A stretch of DNA of 64,000 bases from Selaginella moellendorffii (taxonomy: Eukaryota > Plantae > Lycopodiophyta): positions 248,813 through 312,812 of the forward strand of contig NW_003314343.1 in NCBI RefSeq assembly GCF_000143415.4, written 5' to 3'. A model generated the notes under the pieces. The model was not told where the DNA came from. It saw only the letters and a list, made by a program, of their open reading frames with translations, and ran no database searches. Below are positions 18,113 through 34,770 of this stretch, in pieces; position 1 is the first letter of the stretch, and each line of letters begins with the position of its first letter. A program made the translations under genes and the position numbers.

Positions 18113-20440
18113 TTAACTCGAGCTCTCCGTCGTCTCTCCAAGATAGGTGTTGAAGAGAGCTATGTATCCCGCGGAGGAGCCTGGATTAAACTTGATCGCA
18201 AGCTTGGCAGCTCTTCGAGCTCGTCCGAGATCGCCCTGGCTCTTGCAAGCCGCGAGCATTGTCATCCAGGCCAGCGGTCCAATGTTCTCGATCTTGGTGA
18301 GGAGCTTCTCGGCCTCGTCGAGCTGCCCGGCTCGAGCCAAGAGATCCACGATGCAGCGGTAGTGCTCGCAAGTGGGAGCGATGTTGTGATCCTGGATCAT
18401 CGCCAGGAAATAGCTGTAAGCTTCCTCCATGAGCCCAGCGTGGCTGCAAGCCGAGATGACGCTCACGTAAGTCACTCGGTTTGGCTCCAAGCCTTCGTGT
18501 TGCATGCTCCTCACGAGCACCAGCGTCTCGTCTACGTGACCGAGCTGAGCGTAGGCTGCGATGAGCGAGCTCCAGAGTATCACGTCTCGGACTTCCATGC
18601 CGTCGAAGGCTCGCTGAGCTTCAATCACTTTCCCGCACTTGCCATAGAGATTGACGAGGGCGATCCCGACTTCGATGGAGGAACGCAGCTGCTTCTCGGG
18701 AATGGACGCGTGAACCTGTCTGCCTTTGTCGAGAGCTCCCATCTCCGTGCAGGCATCCAGCACCGCTACGTAAGTTATGTTGTTTGGACTTAATCCCGAG
18801 GCCTCTTCCATTTCCTGGTAGAGCTCCCAGGCTTGTTTGGGATGTCCTGTGTGAGCACAAGCTCCGATCATCCCGTTCCAGCAGATGATATCCCTGTGCC
18901 TCACGTTGCCGAAAATTCTGCGAGCTTCCTCTATAGTCCCAAACTTCCCGTGCATGGCCACCAGCGCGCTTCCCAGGATTTCATGAAACTCATCCCCTCT
19001 CTCCGCGATAAAACCGTGAACGAGCTCCACTTCCTTGAGGCTGGCAGCAGCGTTGAGCGCGTGAGCCAAAGTCGCCCGGTCTGGTTCTCCGCCCTCGCAG
19101 AGCATTAGCCTAAACAGTGTCTTGGCCATGCTCGTCTGCTCGTGCTGGATGTAAGCCGATATCATCCCGTTCCAAGAGATGGTATCCCTCACCTCCATTC
19201 CCGAAAAAATCCTTTCCGAGACCTCCAAGTTCCCGCAAGCATCGTACATGCTTATGAGCGCGTTCGCGACGGAGACATCCCTCTCGAAACCGCATTGAGC
19301 TGCGGCAAAATGAAGAAAGCGAGCGTCAGTAAGCTGCGACCTCTTCGTGCAAGAGCTCAGGATCGTCATGAAAGTTACCTTAGTCGGCTTAAAGCCATGC
19401 TGGAGCATCTCGTGGAACAAGCTCACAGCTCTCTTGCAGCTCCCGTGCTGGATTAGAACCGTCATCATCGAGTTCCACGACACAACTGTGCGCTCCTCGA
19501 TCGCCTGGAACGCATCGCAAGCGCCCTCGAGTCTCCCACACCTGCCATACAAGTTGATGAGAGCAATCCCAACAGCGTAGTTCAGGGTGGTCATCCCACT
19601 TTGCACCAAGCTCTGGTGGATCGACATACCTCGCTCCAGAGCTTCGATCCGAGCGCAAGCGTTGAGAACAATCCCGAGAGTGAGATGCTTTGGCGATAGC
19701 CCCTCGAGCAGCATCCGCTGGAAGAGATCCAGAACGTCGGCCTCGCAGCCCTGGTACCTGGAGCAGGCCGAGATTGCGATGCTCCAGGAGACGAGGTCTC
19801 TCAAAGGCATGCTGTAGAACACCGCCTTGGCATCGAGCAAGCTTCCGCACTTGCCATACATGCTCACCAGCGTGTTCCCGACTGCTATCTCGCAATCCAC
19901 CTGGCTCTCGGCAGCACACAGATGGATCAAAGCTCCATCTCGCAGCTCCCGGGGGCTGGAGCACGCCGTGAGCGCATTGATGATGGTCACCTCGCTCGGC
20001 CTCACCCCTTCCAGCATCATCGCCTTGAACAAACGAAGCGCGACTCCCTGATGCCCGGCTTGGGCATATCCGCCGATGAGCATCGTCCACGCCACAGCTC
20101 CCCTCTCGCGGAGACGATCAAACACTGTTTTTGCGATCTCGACGCTCTCGCACTTGCAATACATGCTGAGGAGCGGGATTCCCACGCTCGGATCCCTGTC
20201 CAGCTGATCCAAGCCCGCCAAGTGTGTGTGGAAGCGCTTCCCTAGTGCAAGCCCCTTGAGCCGTCCACAGGCCTGGAGAATGCGCGCCCAATCTTGCTGC
20301 GGCAAGGAGCTCGCGCGCGCGGCATTGCGATCGAGATCATCCAGCACGGCCTGCAAATCCCGGAAATCCTCGACTGGATGCCGGAGAAGATGAATGTACT
20401 TCACGAATCCCCACGGCGCCTTCTCTCTGCGCGCGAGCAT
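18113..20440 (-). CDS. PLS-class pentatricopeptide repeat protein with E-type tail (no DYW), intronless
   Basis: 775-aa ORF with repeated 'NTLVSMYGKCGSL..A..VF', 'VSWNSMM', 'SVISACSHAGLMEEA', 'EHYRCIVDLLARAGQLDEAE'. Confidence 0.93.
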   Translation of the reverse strand: MLARREKAPWGFVKYIHLLRHPVEDFRDLQAVLDDLDRNAARASSLPQQDWARILQACGRLKGLALGKRFHTHLAGLDQLDRDPSVGIPLLSMYCKCESVEIAKTVFDRLRERGAVAWTMLIGGYAQAGHQGVALRLFKAMMLEGVRPSEVTIINALTACSSPRELRDGALIHLCAAESQVDCEIAVGNTLVSMYGKCGSLLDAKAVFYSMPLRDLVSWSIAISACSRYQGCEADVLDLFQRMLLEGLSPKHLTLGIVLNACARIEALERGMSIHQSLVQSGMTTLNYAVGIALINLYGRCGRLEGACDAFQAIEERTVVSWNSMMTVLIQHGSCKRAVSLFHEMLQHGFKPTKVTFMTILSSCTKRSQLTDARFLHFAAAQCGFERDVSVANALISMYDACGNLEVSERIFSGMEVRDTISWNGMISAYIQHEQTSMAKTLFRLMLCEGGEPDRATLAHALNAAASLKEVELVHGFIAERGDEFHEILGSALVAMHGKFGTIEEARRIFGNVRHRDIICWNGMIGACAHTGHPKQAWELYQEMEEASGLSPNNITYVAVLDACTEMGALDKGRQVHASIPEKQLRSSIEVGIALVNLYGKCGKVIEAQRAFDGMEVRDVILWSSLIAAYAQLGHVDETLVLVRSMQHEGLEPNRVTYVSVISACSHAGLMEEAYSYFLAMIQDHNIAPTCEHYRCIVDLLARAGQLDEAEKLLTKIENIGPLAWMTMLAACKSQGDLGRARRAAKLAIKFNPGSSAGYIALFNTYLGETTESSS

Positions 20441-24937: not shown

Positions 24938-26390
24938 ACTATGAAACTGTTTGATATGGGAGAGATTTACAGTCTACCTGGGTTTGATGGCAGCAACATC
25001 CATGTGTTTATGGAAAGGTTTATAGATGTTAGTTGACTAGACATGCTAGCTGTTATCTCCACCTACACAGAAAGGAGAAGAGTTTTATCAACTGCTATTG
25101 AGAAGTATATTATGGAGACTGCACCTGCTACAGATTGGTTTATGGAGTTTGCATGAAGGATGATCACTGAAACAGGCTGGGAACTTGGAGTCTATCACTT
25201 TCTGAGGGATGATGTGGTTTTGCTGTGGAACGATCCTGAGACAGCAATCTTTAGAGAAGATTTGATATTTACTTACTATCTCTCAGGTAAGACAGTAAGA
25301 ATTACATGATATCGTGATAACTTTTTCAGGTGCCAGACATGTGATTGTACCAGGATGGAGGAGAGGCATGACTCTTGTAGACTGTGGTTTTGCAACTCTT
25401 CTTGAGAGTAGTGATGGAGTGGAACCTTTTGCCCCAATAGTTCCATATATAAGAGGGGTCACCAATAATGAAGCTCAAGCTCCCGGTTTGCTAGTTACAA
25501 TAGGAGACATATGAACTTTAAAACTGAGAGGGGTGTCAGTGGTGCTGGTTAAAGAGATTGGGAATGTGGAACAACTAAATGAGTGTTAGTGAAGACTGGT
25601 ATTTCATTGGTTGAATAAGGTCATTTTGTGAAACAGGACCAGATGTGATATTTTTCCTATGGAATGGTAAGCTAAACAAGATTATGCTTGTGTTTGTATA
25701 GATCAAAATGGGAAGTGACCTTGAAGCAACTCAAGCATTTGCAATGCTATACATCATAAAGCTGGGCAAGAAAGTGAATTCAGAAGGCTCTCACAAACTC
25801 AAAGATTGATGTTCCACTACGTACATAAAGCTGGTTGTGACAATAAGGAATGCCTACGAGTGAGAAAGCTAGCCTTTGGAGAAGGTAGAGTGAACATTTA
25901 AAAGGAAAACATTTGAAAGAAAAAGTAAGGGTAAGTTTTGAAAATTATGTGTTATTTAAACTTTCTGTGGTCTGTTCTATAGGTTCCACCTTTATTAGCT
26001 ATTTGGGCCAATGAAAGGCTACATGGTATTATGAACACAGAATTACTAGAAGCTATAGAAAAATTCGAGAAAAAATGGAATAAATTACACTTGTTCTTAA
26101 TAAGCTGCAATAATGAACATACAATAGAAACTCTTGGTTCATCAGTTGCAATAGAAATTTGCTATATAATCTTGAGAAAGCTTTTGGTAGTAGATGTATT
26201 GTGGTACCATATGTCACAGAGTACACTTATGGGACGTTTTATGAACATATTTAGACAACCATCTGTATACGGAATTAACTTCAAGATATATGTATATATA
26301 ACACTTATAAGTGTTTGAGAAAAGAGTATTGGAAGTGTCTTTGAAACAAGAGTATTGACAGAGCTGTTTGGATTGGTTGAAACACATATA
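24938..26390 (+). pseudogene. Broken copy A of the NTPase-nuclease gene (3' half, internally deleted and scrambled)
   Basis: Colinear homology to 29720-28326 of the intact gene, including intron 3 and the last intron. Contains stops. The missing middle segment reappears at about 26140-26390. Confidence 0.85.
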
Positions 26391-26487
26391 AAGAGTCATG
26401 ATGAAGTTAGTTTCGCATATGGATAGTTGTCTAAATGTGTTCATAAAACATTCTATAAGTGTATTCTATAGCATCTGGTGCCAAAAC

Positions 26488-28180
26488 CACAATCTACAAA
26501 AGTTATCCCTCTCCTCCTCACATATCCAGCACCTGAAAAAGTAAAAGTAAAAATCAAAATATCATGTTGTCATACCTGAGAGATAGTAAGTAAATATCAG
26601 ATCTTCTATAAAGCTTGCCGTCTCAGGATTGTTCCACAGCAAAACCACATCATCCCTCAGAGAGGGATGGACTCCAAGTTCCCACCTGTTTCAGTGATCA
26701 TCCTTCATGCAAACTCCATGAACCAATCTGCAGCAAGTGCAGTCTCCATAATATACTTCTCAATAGCAGTTGATAAAACTCTTCCTGTGTAGGTGGAGAT
26801 AACAGCTAGCATGTCTAGTCGACTAACATCTTGTAAACCTTTTCATAAACGCTTGGATGTTGCTGCCATCAAACCCAGGTAGACTGTAAATCTCTCCCAT
26901 ATCAAACGGTTTCATAGTTCCAGAAAGAAGATTCTCCCAAACCGTCAACAAGCTCTTTCCTGTACCTGAACCAAATAGGGGACTTCACAGCACACCATAT
27001 GACTTGAGCACAAGGACGACTGTCCTTCCTGAGGAGTTCGGCCTGATATGAAGCAGCCCTTCATGCATTGTAATAATGACTGAGCTTCTAGCACGGCAGT
27101 TGATGACGTGTTTCTGAGACTGGTTGAGGAGTTGCTTGGTTTGGTCCGTGAAGTCCATCAAGTGCCTCTTTCGTTAATTACTTCATGCGGCATAGAAAAG
27201 CTGGTAAAAGAGGATGCCACAGTTGGGTACTCCAGCTGAAAAAAACGCAGTCTCGTGGAACAAGCCCTGGCTTACACTCTTTCAATAATTTAAGCCAAGT
27301 GAGCCGTGCAACCCCCACCCCACACAGCACCACTGGATGCTCTGGGGTAATATTTCTTTCTCCTCCTAGAAAACTGTTTTCCATCCAGTTGGCCACTCTG
27401 TGAATATCTTTTGATCCTCCTCCAAACCCAACCATGGCACAGTCACCTGTGAAAAACAAACTGAACCTGGTGCTGGCGAGTTCAATCAGCATTCGTGTTT
27501 TACCTTATAACTAGGTGCTAAGATCACAGTAACCTGCTGACTTGACAACCTTCCTGCAAATCTTTTGTCCAACTCTACAAGTCCACTTCCAACACCTTCC
27601 CACAAAATGCATGGTCTACCATCAAGCGTGCACACGAGCAGAAGGGAACCTTGCCTTGTAACCTGACTCGTCTACTGCTAACTGTGCTATTGCCGGCCGT
27701 TTTGAGAGAGATATAAGCGTCACACCGACGTGTAATGTCTGTTTCTGTAAACAATAAAATCAGTGAAAAAAATTCCCAAGAAACCAGTTACAACGCCACG
27801 TCATAGCCACCAAAAGACAAATGCGCTTGCAGCAGTGCAGTAAAGAATAACAAGCATCTCCATGGCTAAGACACATCTTCTGTTTACACAAACTCGTCAC
27901 ACAACCAGCTTAAGCCAACAGGGACAGAACCTACAGCCATAGCCAATGGCCAGAAGGCAAAACAACAAGTGAGACCACAGAGCGAAGGAAACAATACAAA
28001 CAAAACAAAACCCTCAAGCAAGATCAAACTCGTCAACACGTAGTTCCCAAATGTAGCGCACCACATCAGGCAAACCACCAGTTACAACGGCCAGGCCATA
28101 GCCAGATCACCAGGTATAGAGACGCACGGCACACAGTCACGACCACAGCCAGAAGACAAAGACAGCATTAATAGAACGCA
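26488..28180 (-). pseudogene. Broken copy B of the NTPase-nuclease gene (NTPase part plus long intron)
   Basis: 'MLIELASTRFSLFFTGDCAMVGFGGGSKDIHRVANWMENS' etc. Frameshifts, deletions and an internal inversion at 27094-27225. Confidence 0.88.
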
Positions 28181-28325
28181 ATGGAAGCAGATGGCCATGA
28201 ATTTAATTACAACCACAGGCCAGACACAAGCACCCAAGCACCAAATCCAACAGCGAAGCAAGACCTTGAAACATCCGCCGATTTCATGGAGGAATTACGA
28301 AGAACGAGTGCAACTTATTCCGTTT

Positions 28326-31157
28326 TTATTTGAACTTTTCTATAGCTTCTAGTAATTCTGTGTTCACAATACCACGTATCCTTTCATTGGCCCAAATAGC
28401 TGACAAAGGTGGAACCTACACAACAGACCACAAAAAAGTTTAAATAACACACAACTTTCAAAACTTACCCCTGCTTCTTCTTCCGAACATTTTCCTTTTA
28501 AACGCTCACTCTGCCTTGCCCGCATTCCTGCTCGTGAGCATTCCTTTGTTGTCATAACCAACCTTATGTACCCAGTGGAACACCACTCTTTGAGTTTGTG
28601 AGAGCCTTCTGCATTCACTTTCTTGTCCAGCTTCATGATGTCCAGCGTCGCAAATGCTTGAGTTGCTCCAAGGTCACTTCCCGTTTTGATTTGTACAAAC
28701 ACAGGCATAATCTTGTTCAGCTTACCATTCCACAGGAAAAACATCGCATCTGGTCCTGCTTCACAAAATTGCCCTATCCAACCATATGTTGCAAACGAAA
28801 CACTAGTCTCCACTGACTTGAGCCACTCGTTCAGCTGTTCTGCATTTTCAATCACTGTAACAGCTCCCTCTGATGCCCCTCTCTGTTTTAAAAGCTCATA
28901 TGTCTCCTTGTATGTGGTGTGTGTTTCAACCAATCCGAGCACCTCTGCCGGTACCTTCTTCTCAAAGGCACGTCCAAGCTCCCAACATACATATGTCTCG
29001 AAGTTGATTACACGCTGTCTAAATGCGTTCAGAAAGTATCCCATGTGCATACCCTGTGACATGTGGTGCCACAGTGCATCTACCACCAAAGGCTCTCGCA
29101 AGATTACATACCGAATCTCTGTTGTAACTGACAAACGACGAGTCTCTATTGTAACTGGCAAACCAGGAGCTTGAGCTTCATTATCGGTGACCCCTCTGAT
29201 ATATGGAACTATTGGGGCAAAAGGTTCTGCTCCATCGCTGCTCTCAAGGAGAGTTGCGAAACCACAGTCTACAAGAGTCATGGCCCTCCTCCGTCCTGGT
29301 ACAATCACATGTCCGGCACCTGAAAAAGTAAATGTAAATATCACAATATCATGTAATTCTTGCTGTCTTACCTGAGAGATAGTAAGTAAATATCAGATCT
29401 TCTATAAAGTTTGCCGTCTCAGGATCGTTGCACAGCAAAACCGCATCATCCCTCAGAGAGCGATAGACTCCAAGTTCCCGGCCTGTTTTAGTGATCATCC
29501 TTCGTGCAAACTCCATGAACCAATCTGCAGTAGGTGCAGTCTCCATAATATACTGCTCAATAGCGGTTGATAAAATTCTTCTTCTTCCTGTGTAGGTGGA
29601 GATAACAGCTAGCATGTCTAGTCGACTAACATCTATAAACCTTTCCATAAACGCTTGGATGTTGCTGCCATCAAACCCAGGTAGACTGTAAATCTCTCGC
29701 ACATCAAACGGTTTCATAGTTCCAGAAAGAAGATCCTCCCGAACCGTCAACATGCTCTTTCCTGTACCTGAAACAAACAGGGGACTTTGCAGCACACCAT
29801 ATGACTTGAGCGCAAGGACGATGGGATTCAACAGCGACTGCCCTTCCTGAGGAGTTCGGCCTGATATGAAGCGCCCCTTCATGCACTGTAATAATGACTG
29901 CGCTTCGTCTAGCACTACTGTGGCATCCCCCCAACCCACCTCTTTTACCAGCTTTTCTATGCTGCTAGTGAAGTAAATAACAAAAGTGGGCACTTGATGG
30001 ACGTCACGAACCAAACCAAGCAACACCTCAAGCAGTCCCAGAAACACGTCATCAACTGCCGGATACTCCAGCTGAAAAAACGCCCAGTCTCGTGGAACAA
30101 GCCCTGGCTTACACTCTTTCAATAATTTGAAAAAACTGAGACGTGCAAGGATTAAGGCCCCCACGCCACACAGCACCACTGGATGCTCTGGGGTAATATT
30201 TCTTTCTCCTCTCGGAAAACTGTTTTCCATCCAGTTGGCCACTCTGTGAATATCTTTTGATCCTCCTCCAAACCCAACCATGGGACGGTCACCTGTGAAA
30301 AACAAACTGAACCTGGTGCTAGCGAGTTCAATCAGCATTCTTGTTTTCCCTGATCCACTAGGTGCTAAGACCACAGTAACCTGCTGACTTGACAACCTTC
30401 CTGCAAATCTTGTGTCCAACTCTACGAGTCCACTTCCAACACCTTCCCACAAAATGCATGGTCTACCACCAAGTGAGTACACGAGTGTCCGAGCAGAAGG
30501 GAACCTTGCTTTGTAACCTGACTCGTCTACTGCTAACTGTTTTATTGCCTCCCGTTTGAAAGAGATATAAGTGTCACACCGGCGTGTTATTTCTGTTTCT
30601 GTAAACAATAAAATAAGTGAAACCTTGAAACCTCCGCCGATTTCAAATGCCAAAAACTGGACAACAAATGGGAATTCTGACATGGATGCATGTGCAAGGG
30701 AACAAAGGGCTTTCGCAATTGCTTACCGATTCCATGGGGCACTGCAACATTCAGAACAAAACAAAGTTAGTATTAGATCTGGAAGAAAAAACTATCAATA
30801 GAAAACATGGCCAACCATAGCCACACTTCCAGCAACCCAAAATAAAAGCGACCTCAGGCAAAATCCTTAACCATGACCGAAAGCAGCCATATCCACAACA
30901 CACAGCAAAACGCCCCAAATCGAGGGGGATGACTTACCATTACTTCTGAGGAGAAGGAGTTTTTCCTCCCGCAGCTGCACTTTCTCATTCCACAGCTGCT
31001 CTTCCTTCTTCCGCAGCTGCTCTTTCTCATTCCGCCAATATTCCGCCAGAGATTGATTGCCACTCTGAAGGGCAGAGAGAAAAGATTCCCCAGCCGCTTG
31101 GATCTGCGGCTCAAGAAGCCCGATTTGAGCCTCCACCTTAGCCAATTCCTCGTCCAT
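28326..31157 (-). CDS. Intact 5-exon, about 800-aa coiled-coil header + P-loop NTPase + PD-(D/E)xK-like nuclease (Crinkler/RHS-type CR protein)
   Basis: Exons 31157-30938, 30741-30727 (15-nt microexon), 30598-29372, 29319-28469 and 28415-28326 are all GT-AG and phase-compatible, 2403 nt in total. Walker A 'VLAPSGSGKT', Walker B 'VVLDEAQ', C-terminal 'GPDAMFF...VFVQIK'. Confidence 0.8.
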
Positions 31158-31499
31158 TTTGCTAGCTGAAACCCTATCAGTGGTGCCCTAGAATCGTCAA
31201 GGACAACTTAATTTATAATCAAGAGAGACAAAAAGAGAAAACTCAACCGGCTTCTATTTTACAGTTTTGTACGAAACTATTTCTGCTCATCCCTCTGACA
31301 TCCACCAAAGTGGAGAACGTGGCAGCCGATCGCCAACGTTGCTGAGTTTGGAACGAAGTATGGAGGAAGCATTGCTCTCACGGTTGGAATCGCCGGCACC
31401 GGACTTGTGCTGGCCTCCAAGGCCTAAACATCCCAAAAGCGAAGAACAAGAAAGATCATATCAATTTAAAGCCATAAAGAACTGGTTGAATGATCCACT

Positions 31500-31597
31500 A
31501 ATTTAGGGTTTTTAGGTTTCTTTGATGTTTTGTGAGGTAGTTTTTGCTTTCTTCAAAGTGTTAGACCAAGAGGCTTTCTTCACATGGTATCAGAGGT
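31500..31597 (+). mobile_element. LTR 3' end plus tRNA-iMet primer-binding site (retroelement relic)
   Basis: ...CTTCACA followed directly by TGGTATCAGAG at about 31586-31596. No coding region follows. Confidence 0.5.
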
Positions 31598-31756
31598 ATA
31601 GGTTAGAATTTTTGGCATGAGTAGGGCCTTAGATGATAGGATAGGATGGTATCATTTTCATCTTCTAGAGAAATGGAGTAACAAATTTCCTTGCCTGGAA
31701 AGAACATACACAATTCTGGTTTATAAGGTGGCCCATGGTATCTGGAACAAGAAAAT

Positions 31757-31960
31757 GCCCACTGCATTGTGGGGCCGTCCCTAACCCATAAATTTTATGG
31801 GTTAGGGGTGAAATTGTTTTCACATTGAATACTTAGTTAACTAAGAGTTTTTTTAAGAGTAGGGTTTCCACACCTAAACTCTTAAAAAAACTCTAAGTTA
31901 GGGTTCAACAAAATTTCTATGTAAAATTTAAGGGTCCTCCCCAGGACCCTTAAATTTATA
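31757..31960. repeat. Cluster of adjacent perfect inverted repeats / palindromes
   Basis: 14-bp arms at 31779-31807, 6-bp arms at 31808-31823, a 14-nt palindrome at 31832-31845, 17-bp arms at 31844-31894, and 15-bp arms at 31924-31957. Confidence 0.9.
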
Positions 31961-32290
31961 TTCTCTCTCTTCTGCATGCAATTGCCTACCACATCAGCTA
32001 TGTGCCTCAACTTGACGCCCTAACTTTGGGCAAGAGCAGCTATGACCATGGTGTGAGGAGCAGGGCATTTTGGGCTCCAACACTTCTTCAAGTTCTAATT
32101 AGCAGCAACAACAGATATTCTCTATTCTCTCTTTTTGCATTCATGCACATCATTTAGGTTCAATAAGTTCAACAACAAGATAAAGAAAAAACCCTTTCTT
32201 CAATAGCTCTTTCTTTACTAACTCCTTTTGCAACTCCTTCTACAACTCTTTTTACAACACCTCCAACTGACTAAAGCTTCCAGCTCCACT

Positions 32291-32440
32291 AGAATCTTCA
32301 TTCTGGCTGTTGGGCTGGTCAGCCCAGCCAGAATCCTTATTCTGGCCGTTGGGCTGGTCAGTCCGGCCAGAATCCTGATTCTGGCTGCTAGGCTAGTCAG
32401 CCCAGCCATAATCTTGATTATGGCTGCTAGCCTGGCTAGA
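32291..32440. repeat. 39-bp minisatellite, about 3.5 copies
   Basis: Unit agaatc(t/c)ttattctggc(t/c)gttgggctggtcagcccagcc. It produces the 13-aa 'ARIRILAGLTSPT' repeats in the ORF track. Confidence 0.8.
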
Positions 32441-32629
32441 ATCAAGCTGGTTGTGGCTGTAGGCTCAATTTTCAGCCTGGCCATTGGGCTGATCAACATG
32501 TGGAGCAAGGCACCTGATCTCAATTTCCTGCTACAGGCAACTAGCCTAAGGTTGATTTGCAGTCGGAACAGCTAAGTTTTGGCTCCCCGCTTGATAACGA
32601 GCAGAGAAGTGAAGATCGAAGGGTAGCTC

Positions 32630-32833: not shown

Positions 32834-33067
32834 GGATTGTATATTCATAACATATTCTATGCCTGTAAGGGAAGCAGCCGCCATGAATTTATTTACAACC
32901 ACAGGCCAGACACAAGCACCCAAGCACCAAATCCAACAGCGAAGCAAGGCCTTCAAACATCCGCTGATTTCATGGCACACACATGGCGTGCAATTCATAA
33001 AAGGGTGGATTTTACAATGGTGTATGCCTGCTATTGATCCACGTGTATTATGAGTGTGAGAAAAACA

Positions 33068-34770
33068 TGCGTTCTATTAATGCTGCCTGTGGTTGTGACT
33101 GTGTGCCGTGTGTCTCTTTATCTAGTGATCTGGGTATGGCCTGGCCGTTGTAACTGGTGGTGTGCTACATTTGGGAACTATGTGTTGACAAGTTTGATCT
33201 TGCTTGAGGGTTTTGTTTTGTTTGTACTCACTGGCCGTGGATGTTTCCTTCGCTCTGTGGTCTCACTTGTTGTTTTGCCTTCTGGCCATTGGCTATGGCT
33301 GTGGGTTCTGTCCGTGTTGGCTTAAGCTGGTTGTGTGACGAGTTTGTGTATACAGAAGATGTGTCTTGGCCATGAAGATGCTTGTTATTCTTTACTGTGC
33401 TGCCTACAAATGCATTTGTTTTTTGGTGGCTATGCCGTGGCATTGTAACTGGTTTCTTGGGATTTCTTTTCACTTATTTTAATGTTTACAGAAACAGACA
33501 TTACAGGTCAGTGTGACACTTATATCTCTCTCAAACGGCCGGCAATAGCACAGTTAGCAATAGATGAGTCAGGTTACAAGGCAAGGTTCCCTTTTGCTCG
33601 GACACTCGTGTGCTCGCTTGAAGGTAGACCATGCATTTTGTGGGAAGGTGTTGGAAGTAGACTTAAAAAAGATGTGCAAGATGGTTGTCAAGTCAGCAGG
33701 TTACTGTGGTCTTAGCACCTAGTGGATCAGGGAAAACAAGAATGCTGATTGAACTCACCAACACCAGGTTCAATTTGTTTTTCACAGGTGACCGTGCCAT
33801 GGTTGGGTTTGAAGGAGGATCAAAAGATATTCACAGAGTGGCCAACGGGATGGAAAACAGTTTTCCAGGAGGAGAAAGAAATATTACCCCAGAGCATCCA
33901 GTGGTGCTGTGTGGCATGGGGGCCTTAATCCTTGCACAGCTCACTTGGCTTAAATTATTGAAAGAGTGTAAGCCAGGGCTTGTTCCACGAGACTGGCCGC
34001 TGGAGTATCCGGCAGTTGATGACGTGTTTCTGAGGAGTTGCTTGGTTTGGTCCATGAAGTCCATCAAGTGCCCTCTTTCGTTAATTACTTCACTAGCGGC
34101 ATAGAAAAGCTGGTAAAAGAGGTGGGTGCCACAGTTGTGTTAGACGAAGCTCAGTCATTATTACAGTGCATGAAGGGCCGCTTCATATCAGGCCGAACTC
34201 CTCAGGAAGGGCAGTCATTATTGAATCCCATCGTCCTTGCACTCTATGATGTGCTGCAAAGTCCCCTATTTGTTTCAGGTACAGGAAAGAGCATGGACAG
34301 TTCGGGAGAATCTTCTTTCTGGAACTATGAAACCGTTTGATGTGGGAGAGATTTACAGTCTACCTGGGTTTGATGGCAGCAACATCCAAGCGTTTATGGA
34401 AAGGTTTATAGATGTTAGTAGCTGTTATCTCCACCTACACAGGAAGAAGAAGAATTTTAGCAACTGCTATTGAGAAGTGTATTATGGAGACCGCACCTGC
34501 TGCAGATTGGTTCATGGAGTTTCCACTAAGGATGATCACTGAAACAGGCAGGAACTTGGAGTCCATTGCTCTCTGAGGGATGTTGCGGTTTTGCTGTGAA
34601 AGGATCCTGAGACAGCAAGCTTTATAGAAGATCTGATATTTACTTACTATCTCTCAGGTATGACAACAAGAATTACATGATATCGTGATATTTACTTTTA
34701 TGCCGGACATGTGATTGTACCAGGACTCTTGTAGACTGTGATTCCGCAACCCTTTTGCCCCAATAGTTCC
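33068..34770 (+). pseudogene. Broken copy C of the NTPase-nuclease gene
   Basis: 'SSQQVTVVLAPSGSGKTRMLIEL', 'ATVVLDEAQSLLQCMKGRFISGRTPQEGQSLLNP'. Frameshifted. It is close to the reverse complement of copy B, including its long intron. Confidence 0.88.

Follow-up and report, generated by a model that had tools for sequence, protein, structure and literature searches.

A probable Crinkler/RHS-type P-loop NTPase and restriction-endonuclease-fold gene with a lineage-specific header in the lycophyte Selaginella moellendorffii

Exon-intron structure, transcripts and annotation

The window analysed here is a 64,000-nt stretch of Selaginella moellendorffii DNA (contig NW_003314343.1, positions 248,813 to 312,812 of the forward strand), and the gene of interest occupies positions 31157-28326 on its minus strand. 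Five exons specify an 800-residue protein that comprises a helical N-terminal header, a predicted P-loop nucleoside triphosphatase (NTPase) domain and a predicted C-terminal restriction endonuclease (REase)-fold domain. Taken as a whole, the evidence is best explained by an intact, transcribed nuclear gene of the Crinkler/RHS-type (CR) NTPase-REase family, and we consider this reading probable. The parts of the gene are as follows.

30938-31157, minus strand: exon 1, 220 nt, start codon at 31157, open frame
31157-30938, minus strand: exon 1 product, the 73-residue helical/coiled-coil header MDEELAK...EKLLLLRSN
30742-30937, minus strand: intron 1, 196 nt, GT..AG
30727-30741, minus strand: microexon, 15 nt, TGCCCCATGGAATCG, coding for (V)PHGI, with an AG acceptor and a GT donor
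30599-30726, minus strand: intron 2, 128 nt, GT..AG, retained in some transcripts
29372-30598, minus strand: exon 3, 1227 nt, P-loop NTPase domain
29320-29371, minus strand: intron 3, 52 nt, GT..AG
28469-29319, minus strand: exon 4, 851 nt, linker and REase-fold domain
28416-28468, minus strand: intron 4, 53 nt, GT..AG
28326-28415, minus strand: exon 5, 90 nt including the stop, conserved 29-residue C-terminal tail VPPLSAIWANERIRGIVNTELLEAIEKFK

All four introns have GT..AG ends, with cumulative phases of 1, 1, 1 and 0. The exons sum to 2403 nt (220+15+1227+851+90), equal to 800 codons and a stop, and every in-frame exon piece is open. The preliminary description, drawn from the sequence alone, had put forward this five-exon, stop-free gene with its microexon and 90-nt last exon; the exon arithmetic, the contigs of public runs and the RefSeq protein P0108 all uphold it. 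As the microexon is 15 nt long, both its skipping and its inclusion preserve the frame.

Contigs assembled from four public runs, each belonging to a separate study (assembly sizes of 26-57 Mb), were mapped on 28000-32600. Intron 3 is removed exactly in contigs of all four likely RNA runs and intron 4 in those of three, and the skipped ends read GT..AG on the gene's own strand. Contig overhangs of 13-14 nt connect the 3' end of exon 1 with the acceptor of the microexon at 30741, with the letters ATTACTTCTGAGG behind 30742 and GATTCCATGGGGCA before 30938. Contigs at 30603-30742 read through the microexon donor into intron 2 and thus represent an intron-2-retaining form, in which the exon-1 frame meets a stop at ~30589 (open reading frame 30587-30742). 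In three of the four runs 111-nt contigs terminate at 30599, and run X3 has a 134-nt contig over the same stretch whose 23 extra letters are unlike the intron and which diverges from the genome exactly at 30599. This contig points to use of the exon-3 acceptor at 30598/30599; its extra letters themselves were not displayed. Among the junctions predicted beforehand, those across introns 3 and 4 and from exon 1 to the microexon are therefore visible in the contigs, whereas the one from the microexon to exon 3 is not directly seen.

Wherever the contigs deviate from the window within exons 3-4 (28865-30321), the position is one that differs between the two haplotypes, so these contigs derive from this locus; both alleles appear to be represented. 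Coverage of exon 1 is 10-50x deeper than that of the body, which sharing of exon 1 among paralogues would explain. An additional 5' exon was considered and rejected: the 26 nt that one contig has attached near 31175 are absent from the window and belong to the 5' exon of a paralogue. Upstream of the gene, 31329-31449 reaches a depth of up to ~13,500 in two of the four runs, in contigs with several mismatches, and looks like a fragment of a strongly expressed gene located elsewhere. Rfam has nothing there, and the segment served as an exon in the old GenBank model described next.

The best protein match is GenBank EFJ11403 (P0002, SELMODRAFT_426307), a "hypothetical protein" model of this very locus, with exons 100% identical to the window at, for example, 32484-32272 and 31423-31319. 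It is mis-spliced, skipping the Walker A region, using different 5' splice sites and extending into a broken downstream copy. The published assembly contains both haplotypes, and the allele resides on locus L002 (GL377707.1), flanked by the same Fasciclin and pentatricopeptide-repeat (PPR) genes. RefSeq P0108 (LOC9645782 isoform X1) shows 100% identity with L002 across residues 79-494 and reads ...LLLLRSN-VPHGI-ETAIRRR..., that is, exon 1, microexon and exon 3; it retains intron 3 and ends in ...SGKTARIT. The microexon is identical in the other haplotype, as is exon 5 (100%). Over the 2832-nt gene the alleles show no indels and 39 differences, three of them in introns. The 36 differences within the compared in-frame exon pieces comprise 13.5 synonymous and 22.5 non-synonymous changes, a ratio of non-synonymous to synonymous rates (dN/dS) of 0.50 between haplotypes. 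The gene is intact in both.

The allele differences include a hypervariable patch just past the header: 10 of the 39 fall in 30602-30519, within the first 84 nt of exon 3 (TEITRRCDTYISFKREAIKQLAV versus TAIRRRCDNYISFKREAIEQFAV). Gene conversion from the adjacent broken copies was tried as their source and set aside given a mixed pattern, with 12 allele variants versus 21 window variants common to the local copies.

Predicted ATPase and nuclease domains and the N-terminal cassette

Searches and structure predictions were run separately on exon 3 (29373-30596, minus strand, 408 residues) and exon 4 (28469-29317, minus strand, 283 residues), and conserved residues are numbered per exon, in exon 3 for the NTPase and in exon 4 for the nuclease. 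The key motifs are located as follows.

30365-30342, minus strand: Walker A motif APSGSGKT, exon 3
29918-29898, minus strand: Walker B motif VVLDEAQ, exon 3
28999-28997, minus strand: conserved glutamate E107, exon 4
28756-28748, minus strand: GPD motif, exon 4
28693-28685, minus strand: QIK motif, exon 4 (GPD...QIK spans 28756-28685)

With exon 3 as query, HMMER run without filters on 1.8 billion representatives yielded 80 proteins (E <= 1e-3), 61 of which were aligned. Near-invariant in this alignment are S80, G81, G83, K84, T85 and R86 of Walker A and D230 and E231 of Walker B, among which G81, G83, K84, T85, D230 and E231 are each at least 90% conserved; G277-T278 and G337-R338 are likewise near-invariant. 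The family is thus marked by the motifs GxSGxGKTR, DEAQ and GPD...QxK. The AlphaFold model of exon 3, with a mean predicted local distance difference test (pLDDT) score of 90, adopts a P-loop ATPase fold of the class that includes ORC/Cdc6, TnsC and NLRs, with a helical lid after the core. It resembles TnsC and MuB, both ATPases of transposition, to about the same degree as ORC or NLRs, and as the fold scores are tied between clades, the assignment stops at the AAA+/STAND class, to which the modelled NTPase domain belongs and which had been expected for it. Pfam searches of the three open reading frames gave AAA matches only, all below threshold, and a sequence search of the Protein Data Bank (PDB) with family profiles gave matches at the P-loop level only. 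NB-ARC and LRR are absent from the Pfam matches of the exons; the C-terminus is formed by the nuclease domain instead.

Exon 4 can be aligned with the C-terminal parts of 32 relatives, among which E75, G188 and D190 are invariant and P76, G103, E107 and Q209 are at least 90% conserved, giving the motif EP(L)V ... G..xE ... GPD-x(15-25)-QxK. In most members E...GPD...QxK is situated 150-230 residues past the NTPase. The exon 4 model has a confident core (pLDDT ~90 over residues 103-260) that presents the alpha-beta-beta-beta-alpha-beta arrangement of the PD-(D/E)xK superfamily, with E107 placed in helix 106-118, D190 just before strand 191-197, and Q209 and K211 on strand 202-211. Its top fold matches are all PD-(D/E)xK-type nucleases; in Foldseek against the PDB nothing falls below E 0.1, and the weak list is rich in restriction enzymes. 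A shape search of the ESM Atlas returned a Mucoromycota cluster, 87% of whose members have the Crinkler N-terminal domain, as well as PDDEXK_4 and Mrr_cat clusters. When exon 4 alone was run in a word-indexed search of proteins, only one fragment came back, owing to the length window of the search. In the model, the C-terminal domain folds as a PD-(D/E)xK-type nuclease, and its E...D...QxK site is conserved. Both the REase fold anticipated for the C-terminus and the architecture of header, P-loop NTPase and PD-(D/E)xK-type nuclease are thereby corroborated by motifs and fold matches.

The header consists of a 73-residue helical, heptad-rich coiled-coil stretch followed by the five-residue microexon; its N-terminus, MDEELAK..., reads as not hydrophobic. 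Pfam finds no match in exon 1 to PF20147, the ubiquitin-like Crinkler header with its LxLFLAK-type motif. A search with the N-terminus of paralogue P0098 showed that at least nine Selaginella proteins, of 494-805 residues, carry the header. Downstream of RSN-VPHGI (or VPHEI, VRGS) their bodies diverge into at least three kinds: the body of the present family (P0003, P0098, P0111, P0113), a second P-loop body (P0109, P0112) and a third (P0110, P0114), the latter two resembling the family profile in the Walker motifs alone. The microexon is conserved in P0109, P0112, P0113 and P0110, as VPHGI, VPHEI or VRGS. The RefSeq paralogue P0098 (805 residues) starts at the same MDEELAK and ends in ...PLSAVWAGRKLRGIVNTELLDAVEEV..., matching exon 5; it has no microexon, and its intron 1 holds no counterpart of one. 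The exon 5 tail is homologous to the tails of P0098, P0004, P0006 and P0009, including fern homologues, and the divergent paralogues P0009, P0018 and P0022 have a similar ...QLRxKExQLRExKLxLLK... N-terminus. The coiled-coil exon and the VPHGI microexon are thus a lineage-specific N-terminal cassette that is reused on several P-loop bodies. CR proteins are organised on the principle of an unchanging header joined to varying enzymatic bodies, and Selaginella realises this principle with a header of its own lineage.

Paralogous loci carry an extra upstream SAM-like/helical exon (MIDRAVQSLESEGYEF...KLEPHL; L001:5630-5773 and residues 1-48 of P0003), spliced ahead of the coiled-coil exon. The SAM-like exon of P0003 has no counterpart within the window.

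Local copies, relatives and origin

Three broken copies of the gene lie in the surrounding DNA.

33468-34753, plus strand: copy B, truncated and frameshifted, equal to 30622-29250 only; 87% identity and 87 gap columns by blastn, tblastn matches in shifted frames
26484-27768, minus strand: copy C, truncated and rearranged, equal to 30622-29259, with an internal inverted piece at 27094-27213
24938-26386, plus strand: copy D, partial, from the 3' part of exon 3 to exon 5, with a displaced exon 4 piece at 26120-26386

All three have many gaps and frame changes, and the local copies are 87-93% identical at the DNA level. Copies B and C begin at the same point, equivalent to 30622 and 24 nt before exon 3, and each has ~340 nt of common upstream sequence (27832-28168 versus 33067-33403, 82-96% identical), so that inverted arms of ~1.7 kb, 26484-28168 and 33067-34753, bracket the intact gene. 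Partial copies with shared internal breakpoints (30622 to ~29250) argue for segmental duplication and decay, not transposition.

Such a setting raises the alternative that the gene is a young duplicate becoming a pseudogene, open and transcribed yet functionless like its three neighbours, which we regard as unlikely. Its place in a cluster of truncated, frameshifted copies, the haplotype dN/dS of 0.50 on few sites and the presence of intron-retaining transcripts all fit this view. Against these stand the 2400 coding nt that remain open and free of indels in both haplotypes while the neighbours are riddled with gaps, the retention of all family-invariant residues, the removal of introns 3 and 4 in all or most runs, and the full-length paralogues kept elsewhere.

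A still less probable alternative, raised in the preliminary description, is that of a self-mobilising element, namely a selfish, transposon-borne NTPase and nuclease (Tn7 TnsC/TnsA-like) copying itself around the genome. The likeness of the NTPase model to TnsC and MuB, about equal to that to ORC or NLRs, and the multi-copy, clustered nature of the family would agree with it, as would the literature, in which the CR NTPase-REase pair is derived from prokaryotic transposons (PMC5289972). The locus itself speaks otherwise. No transposase, terminal repeats or target duplications were found, the repeats around the gene being partial gene copies with shared breakpoints, typical of segmental duplication, and not termini; P0098 at L001 is a lone gene among P450, CRCB, DUF4057 and enoyl-CoA hydratase (ECH) genes; the locus is syntenic between haplotypes; and the gene has spliceosomal introns and shares a host-type header exon. 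The proposal of self-mobilisation is accordingly unsupported.

The labelled relatives include many genes of Selaginella, several of which are arranged in tandem on a single scaffold, and sequences from two ferns (Adiantum capillus-veneris and A. nelumboides), a moss (Ceratodon), fungi (Glomeromycota, Mortierellomycota, chytrids, Basidiomycota), an amoebozoan and marine protists. No seed plant occurs among them, in line with the suggested absence from the standard angiosperm gene set, and no oomycete protein was identified among the ~30 labelled matches. PF20147 is found in four of the 61 aligned members. Exon 3 matches P0011 of Rhizophagus, which bears a Pfam Crinkler domain (E 4e-9), with a phmmer E of 5.7e-15, and the UniRef name of P0043 is "Crinkler ... 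domain-containing". Homology to PF20147-bearing fungal proteins identifies the body as the NTPase-REase module of CR proteins. The proposed CR membership therefore holds for the NTPase and the nuclease, whereas the header is a Selaginella-specific coiled coil with no PF20147. This module makes up ~1/4 of CR C-termini, a figure attributed to Zhang et al. 2016 (cited in PMC5289972), who also reported CR homologues in land plants (as cited in PMC5289972 and PMC12957317). The gene class and its presence in land plants have thus been in the literature since 2016, and this is not a new kind of gene.

In a maximum-likelihood tree of the NTPase region the window gene pairs with P0003 inside a nine-row clade supported at 99/96, which holds Selaginella sequences and one Adiantum besides two unlabelled rows; a second plant group lies elsewhere, near Crinkler-N-bearing fungal sequences. 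Nothing suggests recent transfer or contamination. Many relatives are fungal, but recent horizontal transfer from, or contamination by, a fungus, for instance a Crinkler-rich arbuscular mycorrhizal one, is highly improbable for a gene that sits within this Selaginella and fern clade, shares at best ~30% identity with any labelled fungal protein, has introns of 52 and 53 nt, lies between plant genes and occurs in both haplotypes, so that the phylogeny earlier proposed as a check on transfer comes out against it.

Further features of the surrounding DNA are as follows.

18113-20440, minus strand: intact intronless gene of 775 residues with pentatricopeptide repeats (Pfam PPR_2, E 1e-70), which also flanks the allele
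38740-39675, plus strand: open reading frame of 311 residues with a Fasciclin domain (E 1.5e-9), syntenic with the other haplotype
31837-31902: palindrome with weak matches on both strands to MIR781 and MIR1120 (28-30 bits versus gathering scores of 86-88)

The gene had been called the only intact open reading frame in 16 kb, which is roughly right but for this PPR gene. The palindrome is probably a small inverted-repeat element, the matched microRNA families being of the type derived from miniature inverted-repeat transposable elements. Rfam gave only far-below-threshold microRNA matches in the 1.5 kb upstream of the gene, and PADLOC defence models gave nothing meaningful.

Interpretation and comparison with known systems

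An intact and transcribed CR-type NTPase-nuclease gene remains the probable reading of the locus, and several points weigh against it. The RNA nature of the four runs is a guess, and the junction from the microexon to exon 3 is not directly visible in the contig output. Retention of intron 2 in contigs, together with intron 3 kept in the RefSeq allele isoform, means that part of the RNA codes for truncated products. No Pfam family reaches threshold on any exon, and the third catalytic position of the nuclease is Q instead of D/E. A dN/dS of 0.5 on only 36 coding differences indicates weak constraint at best. Nuclease activity and any role in defence or cell death are predictions at this stage.

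For the CR-type protein a mechanism may be sketched by analogy with its structural relatives and with the CR model given in reviews. ATP binding or hydrolysis by the NTPase would act as a switch or oligomerisation engine, and the state of the NTPase would license the predicted metal-dependent nuclease at the C-terminus to cut nucleic acid; the coiled coil may aid assembly, oligomerisation or pairing of family members with one another. The protein has no evident sensor domain. Turnover, tandem amplification and header shuffling would fit a role in biological conflict, such as defence or regulated cell death, and not in housekeeping. The gene itself would have arisen by local duplication inside a plant-specific clade, and not by transposition or recent transfer. 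A bolder and rather doubtful extension holds that Selaginella has an endogenous arsenal, in which one cassette (at some loci with the alternative SAM-like exon) is set on unrelated P-loop bodies, some with nucleases, that serve as nucleotide-gated executioners in immunity or cell death. Such an arsenal would be a nuclease-armed functional analogue of coiled-coil NLRs (CC-NLRs), lost by seed plants.

Within the CR-family reading, the present model supplies a corrected, full-length gene for a locus held mis-spliced in GenBank and whose allele is held as a truncated isoform in RefSeq. It also documents, in a lycophyte, a large family of Crinkler-type ATPase-nucleases that is actively duplicating and stands under a header cassette specific to the lineage.

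Among known systems, the Tn7 ATPase TnsC, MuB, Orc1/Cdc6 and the STAND ATPases (plant NLRs, Apaf-1) share only 9-15% sequence identity with exon 3, and unlike STAND ATPases the Selaginella gene has neither an NB-ARC Pfam match nor an LRR, WD or TPR sensor. The nucleases PaqCI, MspJI, FokI, Hachiman HamA and Can2/Card1 share only 5-15% identity with exon 4; compared to them, exon 4 has QxK as its third motif, and neither a DNA-recognition domain nor one for cyclic-nucleotide sensing can be recognised. Retrotransposon hot spot proteins (RHSP, Pfam PF07999) of trypanosomatids are grouped with Crinklers in the CR class (PMC5289972). In a language-model feature search with exon 4, an RHSP-bearing cluster scores 0.87, below the tool's line of 0.9, and no alignment-based match to exon 4 was obtained, so that this score is a lead only. 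The CRN effectors of oomycetes (Phytophthora), with C-termini of NTPase, helix-turn-helix and REase, follow the same domain logic as set out in PMC5289972, a likeness by description, with no oomycete protein among the ~30 labelled matches.

The closest counterparts are the CR NTPase-REase proteins exemplified by Rhizophagus irregularis P0011 and Entomortierella P0043 (PF20147), which have a homologous NTPase, the same GPD...QxK, an alignable C-terminus, a similar length of 700-900 residues and the same logic of constant header and variable body. They differ at the N-terminus, where the CR proteins have the ubiquitin-like Crinkler N domain and the Selaginella gene has a coiled coil and a five-residue microexon with no LxLFLAK-type motif recognised by Pfam. 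A further difference is the owner, which for the gene described here is a free-living vascular plant and no pathogen or symbiont. Why free-living organisms retain such "effector" genes is a question raised in PMC12957317, and Selaginella, with its Crinkler-type bodies under a header of its own, offers a tractable place to test it.

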